Shown here: positions 1-64,000 of the stretch, one piece after another
Numbering within the stretch: position 1 is the first letter of the stretch
Layout of the letters: every line of letters starts with the position of its first letter
Assembly: GCA_002189035.1 (NCBI GenBank)
Contig: NEEC01000101.1
Span: forward strand, 1 to 64,000
Length of the DNA stretch: 64,000 nucleotides
Origin: Utricularia gibba
Lineage: Eukaryota; Plantae; Magnoliophyta
Reading direction: 5' to 3'
The notes under the pieces: generated by a model
Database searches by the model: none
What the model saw: only the letters and a program-made list of their open reading frames with translations
Told to the model about the DNA's origin: nothing
Made by a program: the position numbers and the translations under genes

Positions 1-77
1 GCTCTCGGGGGGTTTTGGGATTGGGCCAGAGGTCGGGTCGGGCTCACGCCCATAGTCAGTTGTAGCCCGGAAAATAA

Positions 78-392
78 GTGATGCATTTATCAACGTTGGG
101 TTTTCGGCGGCTGCCTAAATGGTTTTTCAAGCAACAGCTTGCCGTTTTAAGGCGGGTGCTGTCGTTGGCAGCTTTGTAAGGGCCCAAGGTTTGGTCTGGC
201 TCCTGAGCCCAATCGGGTCCTACTCGATGAAAATCGTGATGCATTTAATGAAGTTAGGATGTCATGAGCGCCCCAAATGGTTTTCTCAACAACCTGATTT
301 ATATTTGACGAGGTGCTCTAGGCTGGCACTAGTATCGAGCAAATGGTCGAGTCGCGCTCTGGCCCATAGTCATTTGTAGCCCGGCCAAAAAA
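78..392. repeat. Internal ~157-bp sub-repeat: each 314-bp monomer is a diverged dimer
   Basis: GTGATGCATTTA occurs at 78, 236 and 393 (spacing 158 and 157). The two halves share further collinear blocks: GTT.GG, AAATGGTTTT, CAAC, GGTGCT, TGGCA. Confidence 0.85.
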
Positions 393-1618
393 GTGATGCA
401 TTTATTAACGTTGGGTTTTCGGCGGCTGCCTACATGCTTTTTCAAGGAAAAGTTGTCGTTTTTTGGCGGGTGCTGTTGTTGGGAACTTCGTCCGGACCCA
501 AGGTTCGGTCTGACTTCACAGCACAATAGGTCCCATTCGACGAAAATCGTGATACCTTTATTGCTGTTAGGATCTCATGATTACCCAAATGCTTTTTTCA
601 ACAGCATGCTATACACTTGAGAAGGCGCTTTTGTGGGTCACCGAGATCGGCCGGAATTCGGGTCGAGCTCGGGCCCAAAGTCAGCTGTAGCCCGATAAAA
701 GAAGTGATGCATTTATTAACGTTGGGTTGTCGGCGGCTGCCCACATGGTTTTTCAAGCAACAGCTTGCCGTTTTAAGGCGGGTGCTGTCGTTGGCAGCTT
801 TGTAAGGGCCCAAGGTTTGGTCTGGCTCCTGAGCCAATCGGGTCCTACTCGATGAAAATCGTGATGCATTTAATGAAGTTAGGATGTCATGAGCGCCCCA
901 AATGGTTTTCTCAACAACCTGATTTATATTTGACGAGGTGCTCTAGGCTGGCACTAGTATCGAGCAAATGGTCGAGTCGCGCTCTGGCCCATAGTCATTT
1001 GTAGCCCGGCCAAAAAGTGATGCATTTATTAACGTTGGGTTTTCGGCGGCTGCCTACATGCTTTTTCAAGGAAAAGTTGTCGTTTTTTGGCGGGTGCTGT
1101 TGTTGGAACTTCGTCCGGACCCAAGGTTCGGTCTGACTTCACAGCACAATAGGTCCATTCGACGAAAATCGTGATACCTTTATTGAAGTTAGGATCTCAT
1201 GACCGCCCCAAATGCTTTTTTCAACAGCATGCTTTAAACTTGAGAAGGCGCTTTTGTGGGTCACCGAGATCGGGCCGGAATTCAGGTCGGGCTTGGGGGA
1301 CAAAGTCAGCTGTAGCCCGTCAAAAGAAGTGATGCATTTATTAACGTTGGGTTGTCGGCGGCTGCCCACATGGTTTTCAAGCAACAGCTTGCCGTTTTAA
1401 GGCGGGTGCTGTCGTTGGCAGCTTTGTAAGGGCCCAAGGTTTCGGCTCCTGAGCCAATCGGGTCCTACTCGATGAAAATCGTGATGCATTTGCTTTTGTT
1501 AGGATGTCATGAGAACCCAATGGGTTTTCTCCACACTCTACTTTATATTTGAGAAGGCGCTCTCGGGGGGTTTTGGGATTGGGCCAGAGGTCGGGTCGGG
1601 CTCACGCCCATAGTCAGT

Positions 1619-3795
1619 TGTAGCCCGGAAAATAAGTCATGCATTTATCAACGTTGGGTTTTCGGCGGCTGCCTAAATGGTTTTTCAAGCAACAGCTTGC
1701 CGTTTTAAGGCGGGTGCTGTCGTTGGCAGCTTTGTAAGGGCCAAGGTTTGGTCTGGCTCCTGAGCCCAATCGGGTCCTACTCGATGAAAATCGTGATGCA
1801 TTTAATGAAGTTAGGATGTCATGAGCGCCCCAAATGGTTTTCTCAACAACCTGATTTATATTTGACGAGGTGCTCTAGGCTGGCACTAGTATCGAGCAAA
1901 TGGTCGAGTCGCGCTCTGGCCCATAGTCATTTGTAGCCCGGCCAAAAAAGTGATGCATTTATTAACGTTGGGTTTTCGGCGGCTGCCTACATGCTTTTTC
2001 AAGGAAAAGTTGTCGTTTTTTGGCGGGTGCTGTTGTTGGGAACTTCGTCCGGACCCAAGGTTCGGTCTGACTTCACAGCACAATAAGGTCCCATTCGACG
2101 AAAATCGTGATACCTTTATTGCTGTTAGGATCTCATGATTACCCCAAATGCTTTTTTCAACAGCATGCTATACACTTGAGAAGGCGCTTTTGTGGGTCAC
2201 CGAGATCGGCCGGAATTCGGGTCGAGCTCGGGCCCAAAGTCAGCTGTAGCCCGATAAAAGAAGTGATGCATTTATTAACGTTGGGTTGTCGGCGGCTGCC
2301 CACATGGTTTTTCAAGCAACAGCTTGCCGTTTTAAGGCGGGTGCTGTCGTTGGCAGCTTTGTAAGGGCCCAAGGTTTGGTCTGGCTCCTGAGCCCAATCG
2401 GGTCCTACTCGATGAAAATCGTGATGCATTTAATGAAGTTAGGATGTCATGAGCGCCAAAATGGTTTTCTCAACAACCTGATTTTTATTTGACGAGGTGC
2501 TTTAGCTGGCTCTAGTATCGAGCAAATGGTCGAGTCGCGCTCTGGCCCATAGTCATTTGTAGCCCGGAAAAAAGTGATGCATTTATTAACGTTGGGTTTT
2601 CGGCGGCTGCCTACATGCTTTTTCAGAAAAAAGTTGTCGTTTTTTGGCGGGTGCTGTTGTTGGGAACTTCGTCCGGACCCAAGGTTCGGTCTGACTTCAC
2701 AGCACAATAAGGTCCCATTCGACGAAAATCGTGATACCTTTATTGAAGTTAGGATCTCATGAACCCCAAATGCTTTTTTCAACAGCATGCTATACACTTG
2801 AGAAGGCGCTTTTGTGGGTCACCGAGATCGGCCCGGAATTCGGGTCGAGCTCGGGCCCAAAGTCAGCTGTAGCCCGATAAAAGAAGTGATGCATTTATTA
2901 ACGTTGGGTTGTCGGCGGCTGCCCACATGGTTTTTCAAGCAACAGCTTGCCGTTTTAAGGCGGGTGCTGTCGTTGGCAGCTTTGTAAGGGCCCAAGGTTC
3001 GGTCTGGCTCCTGAGCCCAATCGGGTCCTACTCGATGAAAATCGTGATGCATTTAATGAAGTTAGGATGTCATGAGCGCCCCAAATGGTTTTCTCAACAA
3101 CCTGATTTATATTTGACGAGGTGCTCTAGGCTGGCACTAGTATCGAGCAAATGGTCGAGTCGCGCTCTGGCCCATAGTCATTTGTAGCCCGGCCAAAAAA
3201 GTGATGCATTTATTAACGTTGGGTTTTCGGCGGCTGCCTACATGCTTTTTCAAGGAAAAGTTGTCGTTTTTTGGCGGGTGCTGTTGTTGGGAACTTCGTC
3301 CGGACCCAAGGTTCGGTCTGACTTCACAGCACAATAAGGTCCCATTCGACGAAAATCGTGATACCTTTATTGAAGTTAGGATCTCATGACCGCCCCAAAT
3401 GCTTTTTTCAACAGCATGCTTTAAACTTGAGAAGGCGCTTTTGTGGGTCACCGAGATCGGGCCGGAATTCGGTCGAGCTCGGGCCAAAAGTCAGCTGTAG
3501 CCCGTCAAAAGAAGTGATGCATTTATTAACGTTGGGTTGTCGGCGGCTGCCCACATGGTTTTTCAAGCAACAGCTTGCCGTTTTAAGGCGGGTGCTGTCG
3601 TTGGCAGCTTTGTAAGGGCCCAAGGTTCGGCTCTGAGCCCAATCGGGTCCTACTCGATGAAAATCGTGATGCATTTGCTTTTGTTAGGATGTCATGAGAA
3701 CCCAATGGGTTTTCTCCACACTCTACTTTATATTTGAGAAGGCGCTCTCGGGGGTTTGGGATTGGGCCAGAGGTCGGGTCGGGCTCATAGTCAGT
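1619..3795. repeat. 7-mer HOR variant A-(B-C)2-D-E
   Basis: A heads are 2177 bp apart with an extra B/C pair (monomers at ~1932, 2246, 2560, 2868, 3182, 3498). Confidence 0.85.
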
Positions 3796-5309
3796 TGTAG
3801 CCCGGAAAATAAGTGATGCATTTATCAACGTTGGGTTTTCGGCGGCTGCCTAAATGGTTTTTCAAGCAACAGCTTGCCGTTTTAAGGCGGGTGCTGTCGT
3901 TGGCAGCTTTGTAAGGGCCAAGGTTTGGTCTGGCTCCTGAGCCCAATCGGGTCCTACTCGATGAAAATCGTGATGCATTTAATGAAGTTAGGATGTCATG
4001 AGCGCCCCAAATGGTTTTCTCACAACCTGATTTATATTTGACGAGGTGCTCTTGGCACTAGTATCGAGCAAATGGTCGAGTCGCGCTCTGGCCCATAGTC
4101 ATTTGTAGCCCGGCCAAAAAAGTGATGCATTTATTAACGTTGGGTTTTCGGCGGCTGCCTACATGCTTTTTCAAGGAAAAGTTGTCGTTTTTTGGCGGGT
4201 GCTGTTGTTGGGAACTTCGTCCGGACCCAAGGTTCGGTCTGACTTCACAGCACAATAAGGTCCCATTCGACGAAAATCGTGATACCTTTATTGAAGTTAG
4301 GATCTCATGATTACCCCAAATGCTTTTTTCAACAGCATGCTATACACTTGAGAAGGCGCTTTTGTGGGTCACCGAGATCGGCCGGAATTCGGGTCGAGCT
4401 CGGGCCCAAAGTCAGCTGTAGCCCGATAAAAGAAGTGATGCATTTATTAACGTTGGGTTGTCGGCGGCTGCCCACATGGTTTTTCAAGCAACAGCTTGCC
4501 GTTTTAAGGCGGGTGCTGTCGTTGGCAGCTTTGTAAGGGCCCAAGGTTTGGTCTGGCTCCTGAGCCCAATCGGGTCCTACTCGATGAAAATCGTGATGCA
4601 TTTAATGAAGTTAGGATGTCATGAGCGCCCCAAATGGTTTTCTCAACAACCTGATTTATATTTGACGAGGTGCTCTAGGCTGGCACTAGTATCGAGCAAA
4701 TGGTCGAGTCGCGCTCTGGCCCATAGTCATTTGTAGCCCGGCAAAAAAGTGATGCATTTATTAACGTTGGGTTTTCGGCGGCTGCCTACATGCTTTTTCA
4801 AGGAAAAGTTGTCGTTTTTTGGCGGGTGCTGTTGTTGGGAACTTCGTCCGGACCCAAGGTTCGGTCTGACTTCACAGCACAATAAGGTCCCATTCGACGA
4901 AAATCGTGATACCTTTATTGAAGTTAGGATCTCATGACCCCAAATGCTTTTTTCAACAGCATGCTTTAAACTTGAGAAGGCGCTTTTGTGGGTCACCGAG
5001 ATCGGGCCGGAATTCGGGTCGGGCTTGGGGCAAAGTCAGCTGTAGCCCGTCAAAAGAAGTGATGCATTTATTAACGTTGGGTTGTCGGCGGCTGCCCACA
5101 TTTTTCAAGCAACAGCTTGCCGTTTTAAGGCGGGTGCTGTCGTTGGCAGCTTTGTAAGGGCCCAAGGTTCGGCTCTGAGCCCAATCGGGTCCTACTCGAT
5201 GAAAATCGTGATGCATTTGCTTTTGTTAGGATGTCATGAGAACTGGGTTTTCTGAGAAGGCGCTCTCGGGGGGTTGGGATTGGGCCAGAGGTCGGGTCGC
5301 TTAGTCAGT

Positions 5310-7440
5310 TGTAGCCCGGAAAATAAGTCATGCATTTATCAACGTTGGGTTTCGGCGGCTGCCTAAATGGTTTTTCATTGCCGTTTTAAGGCGGGTGCTG
5401 TCGTTGGCAGCTTTGTAAGGGCCCAAGGTTTGGTCTGGCTCCTGAGCCAATCGGGTCCTACTCGATGAAAATCGTGATGCATTTAATGAAGTTAGGATGT
5501 CATGAGCGCCCCAAATGGTTTTCTCAACAACCTGATTTATATTTGACGAGGTGCTCTAGGCTGGCACTAGTATCGAGCAAATGGTCGAGTCGCGCTCTGG
5601 CCCATAGTCATTTGTAGCCGGCCAAAAAAGTGATGCATTTATTAACGTTGGGTTTTCGGCGGCTGCCTACATGCTTTTTCAAGGAAAAGTTGTCGTTTTT
5701 TGGCGGGTGCTGTTGTTGGGAACTTCGTCCGGACCCAAGGTTCGGTCTGACTTCACAGCACAATAAGGTCCCATTCGACGAAAATCGTGATACCTTTATT
5801 GAAGTTAGGATCTCATGCCAAATGCTTTTTTCAACAGCATGCTATACACTTGAGAAGGCGCTTTTGTGGGTCGAGATCGGGCCGGAATTCGGGTCGAGCT
5901 CGGGCCAAAGTCAGCTGTAGCCCGAAAAAGAAGTGATGCATTTATTAACGTTGGGTTGTCGGCGGCTGCCCACATGGTTTTTCAAGCAACAGCTTGCCGT
6001 TTTAAGGCGGGTGCTGTCGTTGGCAGCTTTGTAAGGGCCCAAGGTTTGGTCTGGCTCCTGAGCCCAATCGGGTCCTACTCGATGAAAATCGTGATGCATT
6101 TAATGAAGTTAGGATGTCATGAGCGCCCAAATGGTTTTCTCAACAACCTGATTTTTATTGACGAGGTGCTCTAGGCTGGCACTAGTATCGAGCAAATGGT
6201 CGAGTCGCGCTCTGGCCCATAGTCATTTGTAGCCCGGCCAAAAAAGTGATGCATTTATTAACGTTGGGTTTTCGGCGGCTGCCTACATGCTTTTTCAAGG
6301 AAAAGTTGTCGTTTTTTGGCGGGTGCTGTTGTTGGGAACTTCGTCCGGACCCAAGGTTCGGTCTGACTTCACAGCACAATAAGGTCCCATTCGACGAAAA
6401 TCGTGATACCTTTATTGAAGTTAGGATCTCATGACCCCAAATGCTTTTTTCAACAGCATGCTATACACTTGAGAAGGCGCTTTTGTGGGTCACCGAGATC
6501 GGCCGGAATTCGGGTCGAGCTCGGGCCAAAGTCAGCTGTAGCCCGATAAAAGAAGTGATGCATTTATTAACGTTGGGTTGTCGGCGGCTGCCCACATGGT
6601 TTTTCAAGCAACAGCTTGCCGTTTTAAGGCGGGTGCTGTCGTTGGCAGCTTTGTAAGGGCCCAAGGTTTGGTCTGGCTCCTGAGCCCAATCGGGTCCTAC
6701 TCGATGAAAATCGTGATGCATTTAATGAAGTTAGGATGTCATGAGCGCCCCAAATGGTTTTCTCAACAACCTGATTTATATTTGACGAGGTGCTCTAGGC
6801 TGGCACTAGTATCGAGCAAATGGTCGAGTCGCGCTCTGCCCATAGTCATTTGTAGCCCGGCCAAAAAAGTGATGCATTTATTAACGTTGGGTTTTCGGCG
6901 GCTGCCTACATGCTTTTTCAAGGAAAAGTTGTCGTTTTTTGGCGGGTGCTGTTGTTGGGAACTTCGTCCGGACCCAAGGTTCGGTCTGACTTCACAGCAC
7001 AATAAGGTCCCATTCGACGAAAATCGTGATACCTTTATTGAAGTTAGGATCTCATGACCCCCAAATGCTTTTTTCAACAGCATGCTTTAAACTTGAGAAG
7101 GCGCTTTTGTGGGTCACCGAGATCGGGCCGGAATTCGGTCGAGCTCAAAGTCAGCTGTAGCCCGTCAAAAGAAGTGATGCATTTATTAACGTTGGGTTGT
7201 CGGCGGCTGCCCACATGGTTTTTAAGCAACAGCTTGCCGTTTTAAGGCGGGTGCTGTCGTTGGCAGCTTTGTAAGGGCCAAGGTTCGGCTCCTGAGCCCA
7301 ATCGGGTCCTACTCGATGAAAATCGTGATGCATTTGCTTTTGTTAGGATGTCATGAGAACCCCAATGGTTTTCTCCACACTCTACTTTATATTTGAGAAG
7401 GCGCTATTGGGCAGAGGTCGGGTCGGGCTCAATAGTCAGT
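5310..7440. repeat. 7-mer HOR variant A-(B-C)2-D-E
   Basis: A heads at 5310 and 7441; two B-C pairs precede D-E. Confidence 0.82.
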
Positions 7441-10138
7441 TGTAGCCCGGAAAATAAGTCATGCATTTATCAACGTTGGGTTTTCGGCGGCTGCCTAAAT
7501 GGTTTTTCAAGCAACAGCTTGCCGTTTTAAGGCGGGTGCTGTCGTTGGCAGCTTTGTAAGGGCCCAAGGTTTGGTCTGGCTCCTGAGCCCAATCGGGTCC
7601 TACTCGATGAAAATCGTGATGCATTTAATGAAGTTAGGATGTCATGAGCGCCCCAAATGGTTTTCTCAACAACCTGATTTTATTTGACGAGGTGCTCTAG
7701 CTGGCACTAGTATCGAGCAAATGGTCGAGTCGCGCTCTGGCCCATAGTCATTTGTAGCCCGGCCAAAAAAGTGATGCATTTATTAACGTTGGGTTTTCGG
7801 CGGCTGCCTACATGCTTTTTCAAGGAAAAGTTGTCGTTTTTTGGCGGGTGCTGTTGTTGGGAACTTCGTCCGGACCCAAGGTTCGGTCTGACTTCACAGC
7901 ACAATAAGGTCCCATTCGACGAAAATCGTGATACCTTTATTGAAGTTAGGATCTCATGATTACCCCAAATGCTTTTTTCAACAGCATGCTATACACTTGA
8001 GAAGGCGCTTTTGTGGGTCACCGAGATCGGCCCGGAATTCGGGTCGAGCTCGGCCCAAAGTCAGCTGTAGCCCGAAAAAGAAGTGATGCATTTATTAACG
8101 TTGGGTTGTCGGCGGCTGCCCACATGGTTTTTCAAGCAACAGCTTGCCGTTTTAAGGCGGGTGCTGTCGTTGGCAGCTTTGTAAGGGCCCAAGGTTTGGT
8201 CTGGCTCCTGAGCCCAATCGGGTCCTACTCGATGAAAATCGTGATGCATTTAATGAAGTTAGGATGTCATGAGCGCCCAAATGGTTTTCTCAACAACCTG
8301 ATTTATATTTGACGAGGTGCTCTAGCTGGCACTAGTATCGAGCAAATGGTCGAGTCGCGCTCTGGCCCATAGTCATTTGTAGCCCGGCCAAAAAAGTGAT
8401 GCATTTATTAACGTTGGGTTTTCGGCGGCTGCCTACATGCTTTTTCAAGGAAAAGTTGTCGTTTTTTGGCGGGTGCTGTTGTTGGGAACTTCGTCCGGAC
8501 CCAAGGTTCGGTCTGACTTCACAGCACAATAAGGTCCCATTCGACGAAAATCGTGATACCTTTATTGAGTTAGGATCTCATGACCACCCAAATGCTTTTT
8601 TCAACAGCATGCTATACACTTGAGAAGGCGCTTTTGTGGGTCACCGAGATCGGGCCGGAATTCGGGTCGGCTCGGGCCAAAGTCAGCTGTAGCCGAAAAA
8701 GAAGTGATGCATTTATTAACGTTGGGTTGGCGGCTGCCCACATGGTTTTTCAAGCAACAGCTTGCCGTTTTAAGGCGGGTGCTGTCGTTGGCAGCTTTGT
8801 AAGGGCCCAAGGTTTGGTCTGGCTCCTGAGCCAATCGGGTCCTACTCGATGAAAATCGTGATGCATTTAATGAAGTTAGGATGTCATGAGCGCCCCAAAT
8901 GGTTTTCTCAACAACCTGATTTATATTTGACGAGGTGCTCTAGGCTGGCACTAGTATCGAGCAAATGGTCGAGTCGCGCTCTGGCCCATAGTCATTTGTA
9001 GCCCGGCAAAAAAGTGATGCATTTATTAACGTTGGGTTTTCGGCGGCTGCCTACATGCTTTTTCAAGGAAAAGTTGTCGTTTTTTGGCGGGTGCTGTTGT
9101 TGGGAACTTCGTCCGGACCCAAGGTTCGGTCTGACTTCACAGCACAATAAGGTCCCATTCGACGAAAATCGTGATACCTTTATTGAAGTTAGGATCTCAT
9201 GACCCAAATGCTTTTTTCAACAGCATGCTATAACTTGAGAAGGCGCTTTTGTGGGTCACCGAGATCGGCCGGAATTCGGGTCGAGCTCGGGCCCAAAGTC
9301 AGCTGTAGCCCGATAAAAAAGTGATGCATTTATTAACGTTGGGTTGTCGGCGGCTGCCCACATGGTTTTTCAAGCAACAGCTTGCCGTTTTAAGGCGGGT
9401 GCTGTCGTTGGCAGCTTTGTAAGGGCCCAAGGTTTGGTCTGGCTCCTGAGCCCAATCGGGTCCTACTCGATGAAAATCGTGATGCATTTAATGAAGTTAG
9501 GATGTCATGAGCGCCCCAAATGGTTTTCTCAACAACCTGATTTATATTTGACGAGGTGCTCTAGGCTGGCACTAGTATCGAGCAAATGGTCGAGTCGCGC
9601 TCTGGCCCATAGTCATTTGTAGCCCGGCCAAAAAAGTGATGCATTTATTAACGTTGGGTTTTCGGCGGCTGCCTACATGCTTTTCAAGGAAAGTTGTCGT
9701 TTTTTGGCGGGTGCTGTTGTTGGGAACTTCGTCCGGACCCAAGGTTCGGTCTGACTTCACAGCACAATAAGGTCCCATTCGACGAAAATCGTGATACCTT
9801 TATTGAAGTTAGGATCTCATGACCGCCCCAAATGCTTTTTTCAAGCATGCTTTAAACTTGAGAAGGCGCTTTTGTGGGTCACCGAGATCGGGCCGGAATT
9901 CGGTCGGGCTTGGGGCAAAGTCAGCTGTAGCCCGTCAAAAGAAGTGATGCATTTATTAACGTTGGGTTGTCGGCGGCTGCCCACATGGTTTTAAGCAACA
10001 GCTTGCCGTTTAAGGCGGGTGCTGTCGTTGGCAGCTTTGTAAGGGCCCAAGGTTCGGTCTGAGCCCAAACTTGAAAATCGTGATGCATTTAGGATGTCAT
10101 TGGGTTGAGAAGGCGCTCTCGATTGGTCGGAGGTCAGT
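7441..10138. repeat. 9-mer HOR variant A-(B-C)3-D-E
   Basis: A heads at 7441 and ~10139; three B-C pairs (~7752/8066, ~8378/8688, ~8996/9305), then D (~9617) and a partly deleted E (~9927). Confidence 0.8.
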
Positions 10139-12271
10139 TGTAGCCCGGAAATAAGTCATGCATTTGTTGGTTTTCGGCGGCTGCCTAAATGGTTTTTCAA
10201 GCAACAGCTTGCCGTTTTAAGGCGGGTGCTGTCGTTGGCTTTGTAAGGGCCCAAGGTTTGGTCTGGCTCCTGAGCCCAATCGGGTCCTACTCGATGAAAA
10301 TCGTGATGCATTTAATGAAGTTAGGATGTCATGAGCGCCCCAAATGGTTTTCTCAACAACCTGATTTATATTTGACGAGGTGCTCTAGGCTGGCACTAGT
10401 ATCGAGCAAATGGTCGAGTCGCGCTCTGGCCCATAGTCATTTGTAGCCCGGCCAAAAAAGTGATGCATTTATTAACGTTGGGTTTTCGGCGGCTGCCTAC
10501 ATGCTTTTTCAAGGAAAAGTTGTCGTTTTTTGGCGGGTGCTGTTGTTGGGAACTTCGTCCGGACCCAAGGTTCGGTCTGACTTCACAGCACAATAAGGTC
10601 CCATTCGACGAAAATCGTGATACCTTTATTGCTGTTAGGATCTCATGATTACCCAAATGCTTTTTTCAACAGCATGCTATACACTTGAGAAGGCGCTTTT
10701 GTGGGTCACCGAGATCGGGCCGGAATTCGGGTCGAGCTCGGGCCCAAAGTCAGCTGTAGCCCGATAAAAGAAGTGATGCATTTATTAACGTTGGGTTGTC
10801 GGCGGCTGCCCACATGGTTTTTCAAGCAACAGCTTTGCCGTTTTAAGGCGGGTGCTGTCGTTGGCAGCTTTGTAAGGGCCCAAGGTTTGGTCTGGCTCCT
10901 GAGCCCAATCGGGTCCTACTCGATGAAAATCGTGATGCATTTAATGAAGTTAGGATGTCATGAGCGCCCCAAATGGTTTTCTCAACAACCTGATTTTTAT
11001 TCGACGAGGTGCTTTAGGCTGGCTCTAGTATCGAGCAAATGGTCGAGTCGCGCTCTGGCCCATAGTCATTTGTAGCCCGGCAAAAAAGTGATGCATTTAT
11101 TAACGTTGGGTTTTCGGCGGCTGCCTACATGCTTTTTGGAAAAGTTGTCGTTTTTTGGCGGGTGCTGTTGTTGGGAACTTCGTCCGGACCCAAGGTTCGG
11201 TCTGACTTCACAGCACAATAAGGTCCCATTCGACGAAAATCGTGATACCTTTATTGAAGTTAGGATCTCATGAACCCAAATGCTTTTTTCAACAGCATGC
11301 TATACACTTGAGAAGCGCTTTTGTGGGTCACCGAGATCGGGCCGGAATTCGGGTCGGGCTTGGGGACAAAGTCAGCTGTAGCCCGTCAAAAGAAGTGATG
11401 CATTTATTAACGTTGGGTTGTCGGCGGCTGCCCACATGGTTTTTCAAGCAACAGCTTGCCGTTTTAAGGCGGGTGCTGTCGTTGGCAGCTTTGTAAGGGC
11501 CCAAGGTTTGGTCTGGCTCCTGAGCCCAATCGGTCCTACTCGATGAAAATCGTGATGCATTTAATGAAGTTAGGATGTCATGAGCGCCCAAATGGTTTTC
11601 TCAACAACCTGATTTATATTTGACGAGGTGCTCTAGGCTGGCACTAGTATCGAGCAAATGGTCGAGTCGCGCTCTGGCCCATAGTCATTTGTAGCCCGGC
11701 CAAAAAAGTGATGCATTTATTAACGTTGGGTTTTCGGCGGCTGCCTACATGCTTTTTGAAGCAAAAGTTGTCGTTTTTTGGCGGGTGCTGTTGTTGGGAA
11801 CTTCGTCCGGACCAAGGTTCGGTCTGACTTCACAGCACAATAAGGTCCCATTCGACGAAAATCGTGATACCTTTATTGAAGTTAGGATCTCATGACCGCC
11901 CCAAATGCTTTTTTCAACAGCATGCTTTAAACTTGAGAAGGCGCTTTTGTGGGTCACGAGATCGGGCCGGAATTCGGTCGGGCTTGGGGACAAAGTCAGC
12001 TGTAGCCCGTCAAAAGAAGTGATGCATTTATTAACGTTGGCTTGTCGGCGGCTGCCCACATGGTTTTTAAGCAACAGCTTGCCGTTTTAAGGCGGGTGCT
12101 GTCGTTGGCAGCTTTGTAAGGGCCCAAGGTTCGGTCTGGCTCCTGAGCCCAATCGGGTCCTACTCGATGAAAATCGTGATGCATTTGCTTTTGTTAGGAT
12201 GTCATGAGAACCCCAATGGGTGAGAAGGCGCTCTCGCCAGAGGTCGGGTCGGGCTCACGCCCATAGTCAGT
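10139..12271. repeat. 7-mer HOR variant containing hybrid monomers
   Basis: A, B, C, a B/D hybrid (~11071), an E-head/A-tail hybrid (11377), then D and E. Confidence 0.78.
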
Positions 12272-15200: not shown

Positions 15201-15992
15201 AATCGGGTCCTACTCGATGAAAATCGTGATGCATTTAATGAAGTTAGGATGTCATGAGCGCCCCAAATGGTTTTCTCAACAACCTGATTTATATTTGACG
15301 AGGTGCTCTAGGCTGGCTAGTATCGAGCAAATGGTCGAGTCGCGCTCTGGCCCATAGTCATTTGTAGCCCGGCCAAAAAAGTGATGCATTTATTAACGTT
15401 GGGTTTTCGGCGGCTGCCTACATGCTTTTTGAAGGCAAAAGTTGTCGTTTTTTGGCGGGTGCTGTTGTTGGGAACTTCGTCCGGACCCAAGGTTCGGTCT
15501 GACTTCACAGCACAATAAGGTCCCATTCGACGAAAATCGTGATACCTTTATTGAAGTTAGGATCTCATGACCGCCCCAAATGCTTTTTTCAACAGCATGC
15601 TTTAAACTTGAGAAGGCGCTTTTGTGGGTCACCGAGATCGGGCCGGAATTCAGGTCGGGCTTGGGGGACAAAGTCAGCTGTAGCCCGTCAAAAGAAGTGA
15701 TGCATTTATTAACGTTGGCTTGTCGGCGGCTGCCCACATGGTTTTTAAAGCAACAGCTTGCCGTTTTAAGGCGGGTGCTGTCGTTGGCAGCTTTGTAAGG
15801 GCCCAAGGTTCGGTCTGGCTCCTGAGCCCAATCGGGTCCTACTCGATGAAAATCGTGATGCATTTGCTTTTGTTAGGATGTCATGAGAACCCCAATGGGT
15901 TTTCTCCACACTCTACTTTATATTTGAGAAGGCGCTCTCGGGGGTTTAGGGATTGGGCCAGAGGTCGGGTCGGGCTCACGCCCATAGTCAGT
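12272..15992. repeat. Four consecutive 3-mer HORs (A-D-E, ~0.91-0.94 kb)
   Basis: A heads at 12272, 13185, 14114, 15051 and 15993; the cleanest interval is 942 bp (3 x 314), and no C monomer is present. Confidence 0.88.
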
Positions 15993-17558
15993 TGTAGCCC
16001 GGAAAATAAGTCATGCATTTATCAACGTTGGGTTTTCGGCGGCTGCCTAAATGGTTTTTCAAGCAACAGCTTGCCGTTTTAAGGCGGGTGCTGTCGTTGG
16101 CAGCTTTACGGGCCCAAGGTTTGGTCTGGCTCCTGAGCCCAATCGGGTCCTACTCGATGAAAATCGTGATGCATTTAATGAAGTTAGGATGTCATGAGCG
16201 CCCCAAATGGTTTTCTCAACAACCTGATTTATATTTGACGAGGTGCTCTAGGCTGGCACTAGTATCGAGCAAATGGTCGAGTCGCGCTCTGGCCCATAGT
16301 CATTTGTAGCCCGGCCAAAAAAGTGATGCATTTATTAACGTTGGGTTTTCGGCGGCTGCCTACATGCTTTTTGAGGCAAAAGTTGTCGTTTTTTGGCGGG
16401 TGCTGTTGTTGGGAACTTCGTCCGGACCCAAGGTTCGGTCTGACTTCACAGCACAATAAGGTCCCATTCGACGAAAATCGTGATACCTTTTATTGCTGTT
16501 AGGATCTCATGATTACCCAAATGCTTTTTTCAACAGCATGCTATACACTTGAGAAGGCGCTTTTGTGGGTCACCGAGATCGGCCCGGAATTCGGGTCGAG
16601 CTCGGGCCCAAAGTCAGCTGTAGCCCGATAAAAGAAGTGATGCATTTATTAACGTTGGGTTGTCGGCGGCTGCCCATGGTTTTTCAAGCAACAGCTTGCC
16701 GTTTTAAGGCGGGTGCTGTCGTTGACAGCTTTGTAAGGGCCCAAGGTTTGGTCTGGCTCCTGAGCCCAATCGGGTCCTACTCGATGAAAATCGTGATGCA
16801 TTTAATGAAGTTAGGATGTCATGAGCGCCCCAAATGGTTTTCTCAACAACCTGATTTATATTTGACGAGGTGCTCTAGGCTGGCACTAGTATCGAGCAAA
16901 TGGTCGAGTCGCGCTCTGGCCCATAGTCATTTGTAGCCTGGTCAAAAAAGCGATGCATTTATTAACGTTGGGTTTTCGGCGGCTGCCTACATGCTTTTTG
17001 AAGCAAAAGTTGTCGTTTTTTGGCGGGTGCTGTTGTTGGGAACTTCGTCCGGACCCAAGGTTCGGTCTGACTTCACAGCACAATAAGGTCCCATTCGACG
17101 AATCGTGATACCTTTATTGAAGTTAGGATCTCATGACCGCCCCAAATGCTTTTTTCAACAGCATGCTTTAAACTTGAGAAGGCGCTTTTGTGGGTCACCG
17201 AGATCGGGCCGGAATTCAGGTCGGGCTTGGGGGACAAAGTCAGCTGTAGCCCGTCAAAAGAAGTGATGCATTTATTAACGTTGGCTTGTCGGCGGCTGCC
17301 CACATGGTTTTAAAGCAACAGCTTGCCGTTTTAAGGCGGGTGCTGTCGTTGGCAGCTTTGTAAGGGCCCAAGGTTCGGTCTGGCTCCTGAGCCCAATCGG
17401 GTCCTACTCGATGAAAATCGTGATGCATTTGCTTTTGTTAGGATGTCATGAGAACCCCAATGGGTTTTCTCCACACTCTACTTTATATTTGAGAAGGCGC
17501 TCTCGGGGGTTTTAGGGATTGGGCCAGAGGTCGGGTCGGGCTCACGCCCATAGTCAGT

Positions 17559-50400: not shown

Positions 50401-53400
50401 TTTCAACAGCATGCTTTAAACTTGAGAAGGCGCTTTTGTGGGTCACCGAGATCGGGCCGGAATTCAGGTCGGGCTTGGGGACAAAGTCAGCTGTAGCCCG
50501 TCAAAAGAAGTGATGCATTTATTAACGTTGGCTTGTCGGCGGCTGCCCACATGGTTTTTAAAGCAACAGCTTGCCGTTTTAAGGCGGGTGCTGTCGTTGG
50601 CAGCTTTGTAAGGCCCAAGGTTCGGTCTGGCTCCTGAGCCCAATCGGGTCCTACTCGATGAAAATCGTGATGCATTTGCTTTTGTTAGGATGTCATGAGA
50701 ACCCCAATGGGTTTTCTCCACACTCTACTTTATATTTGAGAAGGCGCTCTCGGGGGTTTAGGGATTGGGCCAGAGGTCGGGTCGGGCTCACGCCCATAGT
50801 CAGTTGTAGCCCGGAAAATAAGTCATGCATTTATCAACGTTGGGTTTTCGGCGGCTGCCTAAATGGTTTTTCAAGCAACAGCTTGCCGTTTTAAGGCGGT
50901 GCTGTCGTTGCAGCTTTGTAAGGGCCCAAGGTTTGGTCTGGCTCCTGAGCCCAATCGGTCCTACTCGATGAAAATCGTGATGCATTTAATGAAGTTAGGA
51001 TGTCATGAGCGCCCCAAATGGTTTTCTCAACAACCTGATTTATATTTGACGAGGTGCTCTAGGCTGGCACTAGTATCGAGCAAATGGTCGAGTCGCGCTC
51101 TGGCCATAGTCATTGTTGCCCGGCCAAAAAAGTGATGCATTTATTAACGTTGGGTTTTCGGCGGCTGCCTACATGCTTTTGAAGCAAAAGTTGTCGTTTT
51201 TTGGCGGGTGCTGTTGTTGGGAACTTCGTCCGGACCCAAGGTTCGGTCTGACTTCACAGCACAATAAGGTCCCATTCGACGAAAATCGTGATACCTTTAT
51301 TGCAGTTAGGATCTCATGATTACCCCAAATGCTTTTTTCAACAGCATGCTATACACTTGAGAAGGCGCTTTTGTGGGTCACCGAGATCGGCCCGGAATTC
51401 GGGTCGAGCTCGGGCCCAAAGTCAGCTGTAGCCCGATAAAAGAAGTGATGCATTTATTAACGTTTGGTTGTCGGCGGCTGCCCACATGGTTTTTCAAGCA
51501 ACAGCTTGCCGTTTTAAGGCGGGTGCTGTCGTTGACAGCTTTGTAAGGGCCCAAGGTTTGGTCTGGCTCCTGAGCCCAATCGGGTCCTACTCGATGAAAA
51601 TCGTGATGCATTTAATGAAGTTAGGATGTCATGAGCGCCCCAAATGGTTTTCTCAACAACCTGATTTATATTTGACGAGGTGCTCTAGGCTGGCACTAGT
51701 ATCGAGCAAATGGTCGAGTCGCGCTCTTGCCCATAGTCATTTGTAGCCCGGCCAAAAAAGTGATGCATTTATTAACGTTGGGTTTTCGGCGGCTGCCTAC
51801 ATGCTTTTTCAAGGAAAAGTTGTCGTTTTTTGGCGGGTGCTGTTGTTGGAACTTCGTCCGGACACAAGGTTCGGTCTGACTTCACAGCACAATAAGGTCC
51901 CATTCGACGAAAATCGTGATACCTTTATTGAAGTTAGGATCTCATGACCGCCCCAAATGCTTTTTTCAACAGCATGCTTTAAACTTGAGAAGGCGCTTTT
52001 GTGGGTCACCGAGATCGGGCCGGAATTCAGGTCGGCTTGGGGGACAAAGTCAGCTGTAGCCCGTCAAAAGAAGTGATGCATTTATTAACGTTGGCTTGTC
52101 GGCGGCTGCCCACATGGTTTTTCAAGCAACAGCTTGCCGTTTTAAGGCGGGTGCTGTCGTTGGCAGCTTTGTAAGGGCCCAAGGTTCGGTCTGGCTCCTG
52201 AGCCCAATCGGTCCTACTCGATGAAAATCGTGATGCATTTGCTTTTGTTAGGATGTCATGAGAACCCCAATGGGTTTTCTCCACACTCTACTTTATATTT
52301 GAGAAGGCGCTCTCGGGGGTTTAGGGATTGGCCAGAGGTCGGGTCGGGCTCACGCCCATAGTCAGTTGTAGCCCGGAAAATAAGTCATGCATTTATCAAC
52401 GTTGGGTTTTCGGCGGCTGCCTAAATGGTTTTTCAAGCAACAGCTTGCCGTTTTAAGGCGGGTGCTGTCGTTGGCAGCTTTGTACGGGCCCAAGGTTTGG
52501 TCTGGCTCCTGAGCCCAATCGGGTCCTACTCGATGAAAATCGTGATGCATTTAATGAAGTTAGGATGTCATGAGCGCCCCAAATGGTTTTCTCAACAACC
52601 TGATTTATATTTGACGAGGTGCTCTAGGCTGGCACTAGTATCGAGCAAATGGTCGAGTCGCGCTCTGGCCCATAGTCATTTGTAGCCCGGCCAAAAAAGT
52701 GATGCATTTATTAACGTTGGGTTTTCGGCGGCTGCCTACATGCTTTTTGAGCAAAAGTTGTCGTTTTTTGGCGGGTGCTGTTGTTGGAACTTCGTCCGGA
52801 CCCAAGGTTCGGTCTGACTTCACAGCACAATAAGGTCCCATTCGACGAAAATCGTGATACCTTTATTGCTGTTAGGATCTCATGATTACCCCAAATGCTT
52901 TTTTCAACAGCATGCTATACACTTGAGAAGGCGCTTTTGTGGGTCACCGAGATCGGCCCGGAATTCGGGTCGAGCTCGGGCCCAAAGTCAGCTGTAGCCC
53001 GATAAAAGAAGTGATGCATTTATTAACGTTGGGTTGTCGGCGGCTGCCCACATGGTTTTTCAAGCAACAGCTTGCCGTTTTAAGGCGGGTGCTGTCGTGA
53101 CAGCTTTGTGCCCAAGGTTTGGTCTGGCTCCTGAGCCCAATCGGGTCCTACTCGATGAAAATCGTGATGCATTTAATGAAGTTAGGATGTCATGAGCGCC
53201 CCAAATGGTTTTCTCAACAACCTGATTTATATTTGACGAGGTGCTCTAGGCTGGCACTAGTATCGAGCAAATGGTCGAGTCGCGCTCTGGCCCATAGTCA
53301 TTTGTAGCCTGGTCAAAAAAGCGATGCATTTATTAACGTTGGGTTTTCGGCGGCTGCCTACATGCTTTTTGAAGCAAAAGTTGTCGTTTTTTGGCGGTGC

Positions 53401-56997: not shown

Positions 56998-57033
56998 GGG
57001 GGGTTTAGGGATTGGGCCAGAGGTCGGGTCGGG
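56998..57033 (+). other. Putative G-quadruplex-forming motif containing a plant-type telomere repeat (example; one per intact HOR, in the E tail)
   Basis: GGGGGG TTTA GGG ATT GGG CCAGAGGTC GGG TC GGG has five G-tracts of 3 or more with loops of 4, 3, 9 and 2 nt. Folding is predicted from the motif only. Confidence 0.55.
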
Positions 57034-57051
57034 CTCACGCCCATAGTCAGT

Positions 57052-58308: not shown

Positions 58309-58611
58309 TGTAGCCCGTCAAAAGAAGTGATGCATTTATTAACGTTGGTTGTCGGCGGCTGCCCACATTTTTTAAAGCAACAGCTTGCCGTTTTAAGGCG
58401 GGTGCTGTCGTTGGCAGCTTTGTAAGGGCCCAAGGTTCGGCTCCTGAGCCCAATCGGGTCCTACTCGATGAAAATCGTGATGCATTTGCTTTTGTTAGGA
58501 TGTCATGAGAACCCCAATGGGTTTTCTCCACACTCTACTTTTATTTGAGAAGGCGCTCTCGGGGGTTTGGATTGGGCCAGAGGTCGGGTCGGGCTCACGC
58601 CCATAGTCAGT
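58309..58611. repeat. Monomer type E (example), carrying the G-rich block
   Basis: Head CAGCTGTAGCCCGTCAAAAGAAG; distinctive tail GCATTTGCTTTTGTTAGG...CCACACTCTACTTT...GCGCTCTCGGGGG TTT(A)GG(G)ATTGGGCCAGAGGTCGGGTCGGGCTCACGCCCAT. Confidence 0.9.
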
Positions 58612-60173
58612 TGTAGCCCGGAAAATAAGTCATGCATTTATCAACGTTGGGTTTTCGGCGGCTGCCTAAATGGTTTTTCAAGCAACAGCTTGCCGTTTTA
58701 AGGCGGGTGCTGTCGTTGGCAGCTTTGTAAGGGCCCAAGGTTTGGTCTGGCTCCTGAGCCCAATCGGGTCCTACTCGATGAAAATCGTGATGCATTTAAT
58801 GAAGTTAGGATGTCATGAGCGCCCCAAATGGTTTTCTCAACAACCTGATTTATATTTGACGAGGTGCTCTAGGCTGGCACTAGTATCGAGCAAATGGTCG
58901 AGTCGCGCTCTGGCCCATAGTCATTTGTAGCCCGGCCAAAAAAGTGATGCATTTATTAACGTTGGGTTTTCGGCGGCTGCCTACATGCTTTTTCAAGGAA
59001 AAGTTGTCGTTTTTTGGCGGGTGCTGTTGTTGGGAACTTCGTCCGGACCCAAGGTTCGGTCTGACTTCACAGCACAATAAGGTCCCATTCGACGAAAATC
59101 GTGATACCTTTATTGCTGTTAGGATCTCATGATTACCCCAAATGCTTTTTTCAACAGCATGCTATACACTTGAGAAGGCGCTTTTGTGGGTCACCGAGAT
59201 CGGCCCGGAATTCGGGTCGAGCTCGGGCCCAAAGTCAGCTGTAGCCCGATAAAAGAAGTGATGCATTTATTAACGTTGGGTTGTCGGCGGCTGCCCACAT
59301 GGTTTTTCAAGCAACAGCTTGCCGTTTTAAGGCGGGTGCTGTCGTTGACAGCTTTGTAAGGGCCCAAGGTTTGGTCTGGCTCCTGAGCCCAATCGGGTCC
59401 TACTCGATGAAAATCGTGATGCATTTAATGAAGTTAGGATGTCATGAGCGCCCCAAATGGTTTTCTCAACAACCTGATTTATATTTGACGAGGTGCTCTA
59501 GGCTGGCACTAGTATCGAGCAAATGGTCGAGTCGCGCTCTGGCCCATAGTCATTTGTAGCCCGGCCAAAAAAGTGATGCATTTATTAACGTTGGGTTTTC
59601 GGCGGCTGCCTACATGCTTTTTCAAGGAAAAGTTGTCGTTTTTTGGCGGGTGCTGTTGTTGGGAACTTCGTCCGGACCCAAGGTTCGGTCTGACTTCACA
59701 GCACAATAAGGTCCCATTCGACGAAAATCGTGATACCTTTATTGAAGTTAGGATCTCATGACCGCCCCAAATGCTTTTTTCAACAGCATGCTTTAAACTT
59801 GAGAAGGCGCTTTTGTGGGTCACCGAGATCGGGCCGGAATTCAGGTCGGGCTTGGGGGACAAAGTCAGCTGTAGCCCGTCAAAAGAAGTGATGCATTTAT
59901 TAACGTTGGTTGTCGGCGGCTGCCCACATTTTCAAGCAACAGCTTGCCGTTTTAAGGCGGGTGCTGTCGTTGGCAGCTTTGTAAGGGCCCAAGGTTCGGC
60001 TCTCCTGAGCCCAATCGGGTCCTACTCGATGAAAATCGTGATGCATTTGCTTTTGTTAGGATGTCATGAGAACCCCAATGGGTTTTCTCCACACTCTACT
60101 TTATATTTGAGAAGGCGCTCTCGGGGGTTTGGGATTGGGCCAGAGGTCGGTCGGGCTCACGCCCATAGTCAGT

Positions 60174-62352
60174 TGTAGCCCGGAAAATAAGTCATGCATT
60201 TATCAACGTTGGGTTTTCGGCGGCTGCCTAAATGGTTTTTCAAGCAACAGCTTGCCGTTTTAAGGCGGGTGCTGTCGTTGGCAGCTTTGTAAGGGCCCAA
60301 GGTTTGGTCTGGCTCCTGAGCCCAATCGGGTCCTACTCGATGAAAATCGTGATGCATTTAATGAAGTTAGGATGTCATGAGCGCCCCAAATGGTTTTCTC
60401 AACAACCTGATTTATATTTGACGAGGTGCTCTAGGCTGGCACTAGTATCGAGCAAATGGTCGAGTCGCGCTCTGGCCCATAGTCATTTGTAGCCCGGCCA
60501 AAAAAGTGATGCATTTATTAACGTTGGGTTTTCGGCGGCTGCCTACATGCTTTTTCAAGGAAAAGTTGTCGTTTTTTGGCGGGTGCTGTTGTTGGGAACT
60601 TCGTCCGGACCCAAGGTTCGGTCTGACTTCACAGCACAATAAGGTCCCATTCGACGAAAATCGTGATACCTTTATTGCTGTTAGGATCTCATGATTACCC
60701 CAAATGCTTTTTTCAACAGCATGCTATACACTTGAGAAGGCGCTTTTGTGGGTCACCGAGATCGGCCCGGAATTCGGGTCGAGCTCGGGCCCAAAGTCAG
60801 CTGTAGCCCGATAAAAGAAGTGATGCATTTATTAACGTTGGGTTGTCGGCGGCTGCCCACATGGTTTTTCAAGCAACAGCTTGCCGTTTTAAGGCGGGTG
60901 CTGTCGTTGGCAGCTTTGTAAGGGCCCAAGGTTTGGTCTGGCTCCTGAGCCCAATCGGGTCCTACTCGATGAAAATCGTGATGCATTTAATGAAGTTAGG
61001 ATGTCATGAGCGCCCAAATGGTTTTCTCAACAACCTGATTTTTATTGACGAGGTGCTTTAGCTGGCTCTAGTATCGAGCAAATGGTCGAGTCGCGCTCTG
61101 GCCCATAGTCATTTTTAGCCCGGCAAAAAAGTGATGCATTTATTAACGTTGGGTTTTCGGCGGCTGCCTACATGCTTTTTCAAGGAAAAGTTGTCGTTTT
61201 TTGGCGGGTGCTGTTGTTGGGAACTTCGTCCGGACCCAAGGTTCGGTCTGACTTCACAGCACAATAAGGTCCCATTCGACGAAAATCGTGATACCTTTAT
61301 TGAAGTTAGGATCTCATGATTACCCCAAATGCTTTTTTCAACAGCATGCTATACACTTGAGAAGGCGCTTTTGTGGGTCACCGAGATCGGCCCGGAATTC
61401 GGGTCGAGCTCGGGCCCAAAGTCAGCTGTAGCCCGAAAAGAAGTGATGCATTTATTAACGTTGGGTTGTCGGCGGCTGCCCACATGGTTTTTCAAGCAAC
61501 AGCTTGCCGTTTTAAGGCGGGTGCTGTCGTTGGCAGCTTTGTAAGGGCCCAAGGTTGGTCTGGCTCCTGAGCCCAATCGGGTCCTACTCGATGAAAATCG
61601 TGATGCATTTAATGAAGTTAGGATGTCATGAGCGCCCCAAATGGTTTTCTCAACAACCTGATTTATATTTGACGAGGTGCTCTAGGCTGGCACTAGTATC
61701 GAGCAAATGGTCGAGTCGCGCTCTGGCCCATAGTCATTTGTAGCCTGGCAAAAAAGCGATGCATTTATTAACGTTGGGTTTTCGGCGGCTGCCTACATGC
61801 TTTTTCAAGGAAAAGTTGTCGTTTTTTGGCGGGTGCTGTTGTTGGGAACTTCGTCCGGACCCAAGGTTCGGTCTGACTTCACAGCACAATAAGGTCCCAT
61901 TCGACGAAAATCGTGATACCTTTATTGAAGTTAGGATCTCATGACCGCCCCAAATGCTTTTTTCAACAGCATGCTTTAAACTTGAGAAGGCGCTTTTGTG
62001 GGTCACCGAGATCGGGCCGGAATTCAGGTCGGGCTTGGGGACAAAGTCAGCTGTAGCCCGTCAAAAGAAGTGATGCATTTATTAACGTTGGGTTGTCGGC
62101 GGCTGCCCACATTTTCAAGCAACACTTGCCGTTTTAAGGCGGTGCTGTCGTTGGCAGCTTTGTAAGGGCCCAAGGTTCGGCTCCTGAGCCCAATGGGTCC
62201 TACTCGATGAAAATCGTGATGCATTTGCTTTTGTTAGGATGTCATGAGAACCCCAATGGGTTTTCTCCACACTCTACTTTATATTTGAGAAGGCGCTCTC
62301 GGGGTTTTGGGATTGGGCCAGAGGTCGGGTCGGGCTCACGCCCATAGTCAGT
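60174..62352. repeat. 7-mer HOR variant A-(B-C)2-D-E, same haplotype as 1619-3795
   Basis: A heads are 2179 bp apart; the first C carries the rare tail GATTTTTATTGACGAGGTGCTTTAGCTGGCTCTAG. Confidence 0.85.
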
Positions 62353-64000
62353 TGTAGCCCGGAAAATAAGTCATGCATTTATCAACGTTGGGTTTTCGGC
62401 GGCTGCCTAAATGGTTTTTCAAGCAACAGCTTGCCGTTTTAAGGCGGGTGCTGTCGTTGGCAGCTTTGTAAGGGCCCAAGGTTTGGTCTGGCTCCTGAGC
62501 CCAATCGGGTCCTACTCGATGAAAATCGTGATGCATTTAATGAAGTTAGGATGTCATGAGCGCCCCAAATGGTTTTCTCAACAACCTGATTTATATTTGA
62601 CGAGGTGCTCTAGGCTGGCACTAGTATCGAGCAAATGGTCGAGTCGCGCTCTGGCCCATAGTCATTTGTAGCCCGGCCAAAAAAGTGATGCATTTATTAA
62701 CGTTGGGTTTTCGGCGGCTGCCTACATGCTTTTTCAAGGAAAAGTTGTCGTTTTTTGGCGGGTGCTGTTGTTGGGAACTTCGTCCGGACCCAAGGTTCGG
62801 TCTGACTTCACAGCACAATAGGTCCCATTCGACGAAAATCGTGATACCTTTATTGCTGTTAGGATCTCATGATTACCCCAAATGCTTTTTTCAACAGCAT
62901 GCTATACACTTGAGAAGGCGCTTTTGTGGGTCACCGAGATCGGCCGGAATTCGGGTCGAGCTCGGGCCCAAAGTCAGCTGTAGCCCGATAAAAGAAGTGA
63001 TGCATTTATTAACGTTGGGTTGTCGGCGGCTGCCCACATGGTTTTTCAAGCAACAGCTTGCCGTTTTAAGGCGGGTGCTGTCGTTGGCAGCTTTGTAAGG
63101 GCCCAAGGTTGGTCTGGCTCCTGAGCCCAATCGGGTCCTACTCGATGAAAATCGTGATGCATTTAATGAAGTTAGGATGTCATGAGCGCCCCAAATGGTT
63201 TTCTCAACAACCTGATTTATATTTGACGAGGTGCTCTAGGCTGGCACTAGTATCGAGCAAATGGTCGAGTCGCGCTCTGGCCCATAGTCATTTGTAGCCC
63301 GGCCAAAAAAGTGATGCATTTATTAACGTTGGGTTTTCGGCGGCTGCCTACATGCTTTTTCAAGGAAAAGTTGTCGTTTTTTGGCGGGTGCTGTTGTTGG
63401 GAACTTCGTCCGGACCCAAGGTTCGGTCTGACTTCACAGCACAATAAGGTCCCATTCGACGAAAATCGTGATACCTTTATTGAAGTTAGGATCTCATGAC
63501 CGCCCCAAATGCTTTTTTCAACAGCATGCTTTAAACTTGAGAAGGCGCTTTTGTGGGTCACCGAGATCGGGCCGGAATTCAGGTCGGGCTTGGGGACAAA
63601 GTCAGCTGTAGCCCGTCAAAAGAAGTGATGCATTTATTAACGTTGGGTTGTCGGCGGCTGCCCACATTTTCAAGCAACAGCTTGCCGTTTTAAGGCGGGT
63701 GCTGTCGTTGGCAGCTTTGTAAGGGCCCAAGGTTCGGCTCCTGAGCCCAATCGGGTCCTACTCGATGAAAATCGTGATGCATTTGCTTTTGTTAGGATGT
63801 CATGAGAACCCCAATGGGTTTTCTCCACACTCTACTTTATATTTGAGAAGGCGCTCTCGGGGGGTTTTGGATTGGGCCAGAGGTCGGGTCGGGCTCACGC
63901 CCATAGTCAGTTGTAGCCCGGAAAATAAGTCATGCATTTATCAACGTTGGGTTTTCGGCGGCTGCCTAAATGGTTTTTCAAGCAACAGCTTGCCGTTTTA

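Follow-up and report, generated by a model that had tools for sequence, protein, structure and literature searches.

In human alpha satellite, non-random breakpoints within monomers were reportedly mapped by Warburton, Waye and Willard in 1993. Alternating monomer types underlie the HORs of suprachromosomal families 1 and 2, so that in-register slips proceed by monomer pairs. Among plants, the HORs of maize CentC, maize knob180/TR-1 and Arabidopsis CEN178 are mostly irregular and short-range. Variant HORs of human alpha satellite differ by whole monomers, cluster and expand locally and share descent; they have been ascribed to unequal crossing-over or gene conversion, and "dimeric archetypes" of alpha satellite are mentioned in the same work (PMC7732198). 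In plant satellites, the accepted explanation for HORs is unequal crossing-over or break-induced replication (PMC13011684).

The window analysed here, 64,000 bp from Utricularia gibba, is an uninterrupted satellite array of ~313-bp monomers (1-64000, plus strand). We decomposed it with a StringDecomposer-type dynamic programme, using as templates five monomers cut from positions 1-1557. This gave 207 monomers in a single orientation, forming 42 complete HOR units followed by a cut A at the array end (63853-64000, plus strand). Monomer lengths are mostly 311-316 bp, with a maximum of 316 bp, and the full tiling left no foreign insert in the 64,000 bases. TRF returned a period of 312-314 over the whole 64 kb, GC content is steady at 0.48-0.50, and the GC skew is positive across the window. 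Nearest-copy distances of 25-mers peak at 627-628, about 1566 and about 940 bp. The 313-bp monomer is itself an old ~157-bp dimer, with 54-64% identity between its two halves. An Rfam search with two units at an E-value of 10 gave only chance matches to RT-13 (17.9 bits) and showed no 5S or other RNA origin for the satellite. No published description of this satellite was found in the literature on ~314 bp plant HORs, on Utricularia/Genlisea centromere repeats or with an 18-base monomer word.

Unsupervised average-linkage clustering of the 207 monomers recovered the same five classes at 2% distance, with B and D, which are 97.2% identical, merging at 3%. Identity is 75-92% between classes (97% for B-D) and 99.0-99.3% within a class. 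Neighbouring monomers are diverged and monomers one HOR apart are near-identical, as in a HOR, and the class order is fixed as expected of one, 29 of the 42 units reading ABCDE and the others A(BC)nDE. The classes fall into two superfamilies, type 1 {A,C,E} and type 2 {B,D}, which are 77% identical to each other. The class consensus sequences of A and C differ in columns 0-125 only, and those of B and D from column 267 onward only. The near-identity of B and D stated in the original prediction extends to column 266 and gives way in the last ~70 columns, where there are 8-10 fixed differences. C and E are identical over columns 126-262 save three sites (136, 183, 207). C combines an E-like head with an A-identical tail. 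Hybrid monomers are present in the array.

The label string of the window matches ^(A(BC)*DE)+A$. The 42 complete units comprise 29 ABCDE, 8 ADE, 4 ABCBCDE and 1 ABCBCBCDE, which reproduces exactly the predicted rule A-(B-C)n-D-E and its counts for n from 0 to 3. Both loss and gain are represented, by 8 units with n=0 and 5 units with n>=2. Only 7 of the 25 possible monomer transitions are used (A>B 34, A>D 8, B>C 40, C>B 6, C>D 34, D>E 42, E>A 42). As anticipated, units hold 3, 5, 7 or 9 monomers, with A and E single-copy in 42/42; the decomposition returned no even-numbered unit and no unit with multiple A or E, and no reciprocal A-head/E-tail 1-mer occurs among the 207 monomers. A typical 5-mer lies at 19288-20857 on the plus strand (A 19288-19601, B 19602-19916, C 19917-20230, D 20231-20546, E 20547-20857). 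Shuffled label strings never fitted the grammar (0/20,000 free and 0/20,000 type-preserving shuffles), the best having 14% of units fitting. When the monomers are re-phased at alignment column 126, the grammar holds in 41/42 units, the exception being the unit at 10115-12229. The median lengths of 3-, 5-, 7- and 9-mers are 912, 1563, 2158 and 2714 bp. Deletions, present in many units, turn the predicted ~628-bp step into one of about 600-650 bp. Inter-unit distances revealed no super-HOR periodicity above the 5-mer: their mean climbs smoothly as the lag grows, going from 5.0 substitutions per kb up to 6.7, and this rise indicates local homogenisation.

The odd-number rule reflects dimer parity combined with one parity-breaking E|A junction, since type 1 and type 2 monomers alternated in an older dimer. 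Another way to explain the odd number, with A as a clean hybrid of a type-2 head and a type-1 tail, was rejected, as type-1 and type-2 states are intermixed in the head of A. The type-2-like part of E is limited to its last ~20 bp.

The basis of the cassette variation is seen when the consensus HOR is compared with itself in the two-monomer register. In this register, the A-tail plus B-head equals the C-tail plus D-head over about 446 bp. The tract runs from A column 126 to B column 266 as exact runs of 49+216+179 bp, interrupted solely at two sites that are both polymorphic within classes. In all other registers, exact identity runs reach at most 63 bp. We consider it highly probable that this is a 5-mer array in which cassettes are gained and lost through out-of-register exchange in the 446-bp tract, with local copying of the products. 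The window itself shows how the array is built, where the identities and the breakpoint intervals lie and that variants share descent; the recombination mechanism that we infer is as follows. The two old types alternate as a 628-bp dimer, and the present unit is a 5-mer of the form 1-2-1-2-1, in which a dimer-length internal segment occurs twice and the type-1 monomers E and A adjoin at the unit boundary. Homology-directed repair or exchange out of register would then almost always slip by exactly two monomers, inside the 446-bp tract, because no other out-of-register alignment exceeds 63 bp of identity. Unequal sister-chromatid exchange, break-induced replication and single-strand annealing are candidate routes that would look alike here. 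Such a slip would add or delete one B-C cassette, leaving A, D and E unaffected, and cassette-only slips would yield the A-(B-C)n-D-E grammar. Variant units may afterwards have been copied locally together with their neighbours. Because independent events are few, about 5-7, the statement that all 42 units fit overstates its statistical weight.

Six ADE units and one interrupting 5-mer (15934-17498) occupy 12230-19287 on the plus strand, as delimited by decomposition, D haplotypes and unit distances. The D haplotype CCATGAC is common to all six, with one change in the copy at 13143, and three of the six are 0-1.1 substitutions per kb from each other; this is in keeping with a single deletion that was then amplified locally. 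Two further ADE units are isolated on the plus strand. The one at 30156-31057 carries the D haplotype of its neighbours (TTACGAC type) and has the unit at 27129 as its nearest, and the one at 40422-41360 matches the 5-mer at 37320 with 0 substitutions per kb. On these grounds, both appear to be local, independent deletions, and at least 3 independent 5-to-3 deletions are present. The breakpoint lies between A column 183 and D column 71 in the unit at 30156, before D column 75 in the unit at 40422, and before D column 136 in the 12-19 kb cluster. All these intervals fall inside the A126-B266 / C126-D266 identity tract, that is, at homologous positions of paralogous monomers, in agreement with the original proposal that the B/D and A-tail/C-tail identities permit cassette gain and loss by exchange. 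The A|D junctions are canonical in 8/8, with small gaps in two.

Alternatively, the 3-mer ADE could be ancestral and the present ADE units relics, the 5-mer having arisen once when C was formed by exchange of E x A and D was copied into B. The composite structure of C fits such an origin, as do the survival at 11317-11629 of a C monomer whose E head is unmodified, the B* allele (GAA at columns 267/268), which is intermediate between D and B, and the location of the ADE cluster in the older, more diverged left flank. However, the units at 40422 and 30156 carry the haplotypes of their 5-mer neighbours, so that at least these two should be recent deletions, and the cluster haplotype CCATGAC is also found in the 5-mers at 28627, 34193 and 41361. 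The 5-mer could well have originated from an ancestral 3-mer, but the 3-mers now in the array are left unexplained by it, and we regard it as an unlikely account of the array. Cassette exchange within a 5-mer array, which we prefer, would set the direction of change as 5 to 3, and as 5 to 7 to 9.

Two features at the edge of the tract count against the exchange reading. The B-tail plus C-head differs from the D-tail plus E-head by 18 fixed differences within about 180 bp, whereas the adjoining 446 bp has none. This pattern is not clock-like, and accounting for it takes conversion from elsewhere or else ongoing homogenisation of the tract. The extra B monomers are D-like at columns 267/268; their breakpoints could therefore lie at the tract edge rather than within it, or these monomers could simply carry the older B allele (GAA), which is present in plain 5-mers too.

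The longer units all lie on the plus strand. The 7-mer at 1559-3743 has three private base changes at its extra C|B junction (2498/2499), and the head of its E (3439-3743) contains a C-like patch. In the 7-mer at 5262-7400, the extra junction (6167/6168) has one of the three private changes and the second B is D-like at column 284. The only 9-mer, at 7401-10114, has both extra C|B junctions canonical and has lost about 107 bp to deletions at E|A junctions. The last 7-mer, at 60117-62294, has at its junction (61054/61055) the same three private changes as those at 1559 and 10115. These changes, to T at C column 319 and at B columns 5 and 15, fall within 35 bp at the extra junction and are common to three of the four 7-mers, 58 kb apart, in a region otherwise invariant at 34/34 C|D and 30/34 A|B junctions. 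Because they are shared, the three 7-mers have a common descent, and a real variant lineage has probably spread.

The 7-mer at 10115-12229 differs from the rest in its extra cassette, which consists of B* (11011-11316) and C' (11317-11629), the latter with an E head and a C tail. Re-phased, the unit reads XYXWXWZ, the extra cassette being D/E-like and not B-C-like. Majority labelling conceals this exceptional cassette. Such a mosaic, with an E-like head after a B*-type tail, is not accounted for by one exchange within the 446-bp tract.

Conservation within the unit is lowest at the E|A junction, where larger deletions (7 bp or more) affect 11/42 junctions. We advance only tentatively, as a joint and rather improbable idea, that the private junction changes are a mutational scar of 7-mer origin, left for example by error-prone break-induced replication, and that the only G-quadruplex-type motif of the unit causes the E|A deletion hot spot. 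If both were true, they would be sequence-level footprints of the repair pathways that remodel plant satellite arrays.

A further alternative, slightly less likely still than an ancestral 3-mer, is that the 3-, 7- and 9-mers are artefacts introduced when a near-identical repeat was assembled from long reads or polished, and that the true array is all 5-mers. Relative to the class consensus, 925 bases are deleted and 53 inserted, with 239 single-base deletions, and such small deletions are probably long-read errors; the variant units, moreover, lie mostly in the indel-rich left 19 kb. Together with the larger E|A junction deletions, the small deletions blur the unit lengths. However, three 7-mers have the same three private substitutions right at the extra junction, which is not what a mis-join would produce. 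A mis-registered overlap of 628 bp would presumably conflict outside the 446-bp tract, and errors should therefore alter the number of whole units, not of cassettes. In addition, the isolated ADE units at 30156 and 40422 sit in the cleaner part of the array. That the rule is instead kept by selection, for example through protein binding or chromatin phasing that needs one A and one E, is very improbable: the single-copy state of A and E in every unit would suit it and the window gave no support for it, but the identity map by itself predicts the rule, the E|A junction with its larger deletions is the part conserved least, and in a study of maize HORs centromere function was not tied to specific HORs (PMC13011684).

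The exchange of cassettes within the identity tract, as we favour it, involves no new principle, as unequal exchange, dimer parity and local variant spread are textbook satellite dynamics. The array nevertheless offers a clean, fully resolved plant case in which the internal identity map of a HOR dictates the possible length variants, one 446-bp tract accounting for all variants but one. It is also a small natural system for mapping breakpoints and counting independent events. A practical use lies in annotating the satellite arrays of the Utricularia gibba genome and judging their assembly quality.

Compared with described systems, the array resembles human alpha satellite (the D17Z1 16-mer with 15-, 14- and 13-mers, the D11Z1 5-mer with 6- and 7-mers, and DXZ1) in having a canonical HOR accompanied by whole-monomer variants. 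It differs in being a plant satellite with a 313-bp monomer, and in that variation is limited to one two-monomer cassette because there is a single 446-bp identity tract. As in suprachromosomal families 1 and 2, two alternating monomer types lie beneath the HOR; here, however, the sequence is unrelated and the HOR is odd-numbered, because two type-1 monomers adjoin at E|A. With maize CentC, knob180/TR-1 and Arabidopsis CEN178 it shares the character of a tandem plant satellite with local HOR patterns. What sets it apart from the maize and Arabidopsis HORs is a regular 5-mer whose copies are 99% identical and whose cassette polymorphism is clean.

The window is a single tandem array with a period of 312–314 bp throughout, as detected by TRF. 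Because GC content (0.48–0.50) and strand skew are constant along it, neither an inversion nor a foreign insert is present in the window. The distance from a 25-mer to its nearest copy peaks at 627–628, about 1566 and about 940 bp. When a StringDecomposer-type dynamic programme was run with five query monomers taken from positions 1–1557, 207 monomers, the longest not exceeding 316 bp, tiled all 64,000 bases, and the resulting label string resolved into 42 complete units, followed by a truncated A at 63853–64000. The original prediction held that every unit obeys A-(B-C)n-D-E with n = 0–3, and this five-monomer decomposition reproduced both the rule and the predicted counts exactly: 29 ABCDE, 8 ADE, 4 ABCBCDE and 1 ABCBCBCDE. 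Median unit lengths are 912, 1563, 2158 and 2714 bp for the 3-, 5-, 7- and 9-mers, respectively. The labels show just seven kinds of transition (A>B 34, A>D 8, B>C 40, C>B 6, C>D 34, D>E 42, E>A 42), and the rule was obeyed in 0/20,000 free shuffles and 0/20,000 type-preserving ones. The variable number of B-C cassettes is a real feature of the units.

The monomer classes do not depend on the labels. When all 207 monomers were aligned and clustered without them, the main clusters at 2% distance were five, matching A to E, with within-class identities of 99.0–99.3%. B and D, which are 97.2% identical, join at 3% distance, and at 15% two superfamilies are left, {A,C,E} (type 1) and {B,D} (type 2), about 77% identical. 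These two superfamilies indicate that the array is fundamentally built of two old monomer types alternating as a dimer. The halves of each monomer are 54–64% identical, and each monomer is in turn an old dimer of ~157-bp units. Two type-1 monomers adjoin at one site per unit, the E|A junction. The odd number of monomers in every unit is a matter of dimer parity combined with this one parity-breaking junction.

Comparison of the class consensus sequences, in columns of the alignment of all monomers, shows where homology could act. A and C differ only in columns 0–125 and are identical beyond. The near-identity of B and D, part of the original prediction, holds completely through column 266 and breaks down in the final ~70 columns, where there are 8–10 differences. 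The heads of C and E resemble each other, with about 10 differences, and their tails differ; in between (columns 126–262) the two are identical except at three sites (136, 183, 207). Self-comparison of the consensus HOR covered all monomer registers. With a shift of two monomers, exact runs of 49, 216 and 179 bp extend from A column 126 to B column 266, interrupted at two sites only, both polymorphic within classes; in all other registers exact runs do not exceed 63 bp. Slippage by two monomers within this 446-bp tract is therefore far likelier than slippage in any other register. We propose that an out-of-register homologous event slips by two monomers inside the tract, which would add or delete one B-C cassette while A, D and E stay single. 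Such homology-directed exchange is, in our judgement, very probably the mechanism. Between the B tail plus C head and the D tail plus E head there are 18 differences within about 180 bp and none in the adjoining 446 bp, a distribution that is not clock-like.

Only a small number of independent events underlie the rule. ADE 40422 (units are named by start position) differs from the 5-mer at 37320 by 0 substitutions per kb, the unit nearest to ADE 30156 is that at 27129, and the D haplotype of each of these two 3-mers is that of its neighbours. The six ADE units at 12230–19287 have the D haplotype CCATGAC in common (with a single change in 13143), and the distances among three of these units are 0–1.1 substitutions per kb, which suggests a single origin followed by local copying. 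Taken together, these distances and haplotypes amount to at least three independent 5-to-3 deletions. All three breakpoints lie inside the tract: between A column 183 and D column 71 in ADE 30156, before D column 75 in ADE 40422, and before D column 136 in the cluster. The identity map and these breakpoints support, with refinements, the predicted change of one cassette by out-of-register exchange.

Among the gains, the 7-mers at 1559, 10115 and 60117 have in common three private substitutions, which lie in a 35-bp span at the extra C|B junction (C column 319 A>T, B column 5 C>T and B column 15 A>T; junctions at 2498, 11010 and 61054, in the stretches 2465–2515, 10977–11027 and 61021–61071). 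The same stretch is invariant in 34/34 C|D and 30/34 A|B junctions (64/68 comparable junctions); one of the three changes is present in the 7-mer at 5262, and the 9-mer lacks all of them. The shared substitutions show that the three 7-mers are of common descent and have been spread across 58 kb. The substitutions themselves may be a clustered-mutation scar or mark an imported cassette. The ends of the window (1–3743 and 58555–64000) are also alike: the closest match to unit 1 is unit 62295 (2.6 substitutions per kb), and a 5-7-5 run bearing one and the same 7-mer haplotype occurs at each end. A large-scale duplication inside the array could account for this likeness, as could an effect of assembly layout.

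The prediction that all units fit holds in its own phase (42/42) and fails for one unit when the array is re-phased at column 126. With X = A126–B125, Y = B126–C125, W = D126–E125 and Z = E126–A125, 41/42 units match X(YX)nWZ, the exception being unit 10115–12229, with the reading XYXWXWZ. In the original phase, majority labelling masks the D/E-like nature of its extra cassette; at 11011–11629 a B*-type tail is followed by a C with a fully E-like head. One exchange within the 446-bp tract does not account for this unit, whose extra cassette may either represent an old evolutionary stage intermediate between the D-E and B-C cassettes or have arisen by a double event, as a double recombinant. 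Hybrid monomers are the C at 11317–11629 (E head on C tail), the E monomers starting at 3439 and 7105 (C-like patch in the head) and the B monomers starting at 6168 and 8319 (D-like at columns 284/285). At columns 267/268, B has three alleles (GAA, GCA, GCT) in blocks of consecutive units, for example 31367–34816 and 43223–51369, which serve as a marker of local homogenisation domains. The extra B monomers carry GAA, also found in plain 5-mers. The three alleles form a stepwise series starting from the D state.

Relative to the class consensus, deleted bases outnumber inserted ones by 925 to 53 (about 17 to 1), most events involve a single base, and 239 events are single-base deletions; this excess is probably long-read consensus error, so caution is needed in interpreting minor differences between copies. 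The left 19 kb has more substitutions and more deletions, and most variant units lie there. Assembly error as the source of the variant units is the main residual doubt, one that we consider quite improbable. Almost all deletions of at least 8 bp fall in the E tail or the A head (15/16 affected monomers are E or A), with breakpoints varying between junctions (for example 5100–5366, 9985–10188, 12060–12326, 18234–18476, 28463–28720 and 29965–30232). This hot spot contains the HOR unit's sole relaxed G-quadruplex motif, at A positions 7–36, and could represent real fragility or a polishing artefact from mis-mapped reads of other arrays.

The satellite is from a plant and is not a human sequence. 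No RNA-family relation of the satellite was found, nor any published description in the literature searched. Canonical HORs of human alpha satellite occur alongside structural variants that differ by whole monomers, form local clusters, expand locally and share descent; these variants have been attributed to unequal crossing-over and gene conversion (PMC7732198). The accepted view of HOR patterns in plant satellites is that they arise by unequal crossing-over and break-induced replication (PMC13011684). Like human alpha satellite, the present array combines a canonical HOR with variants differing by whole monomers, and it is an unusually tidy further case of the variant HORs known from human alpha and plant satellites.
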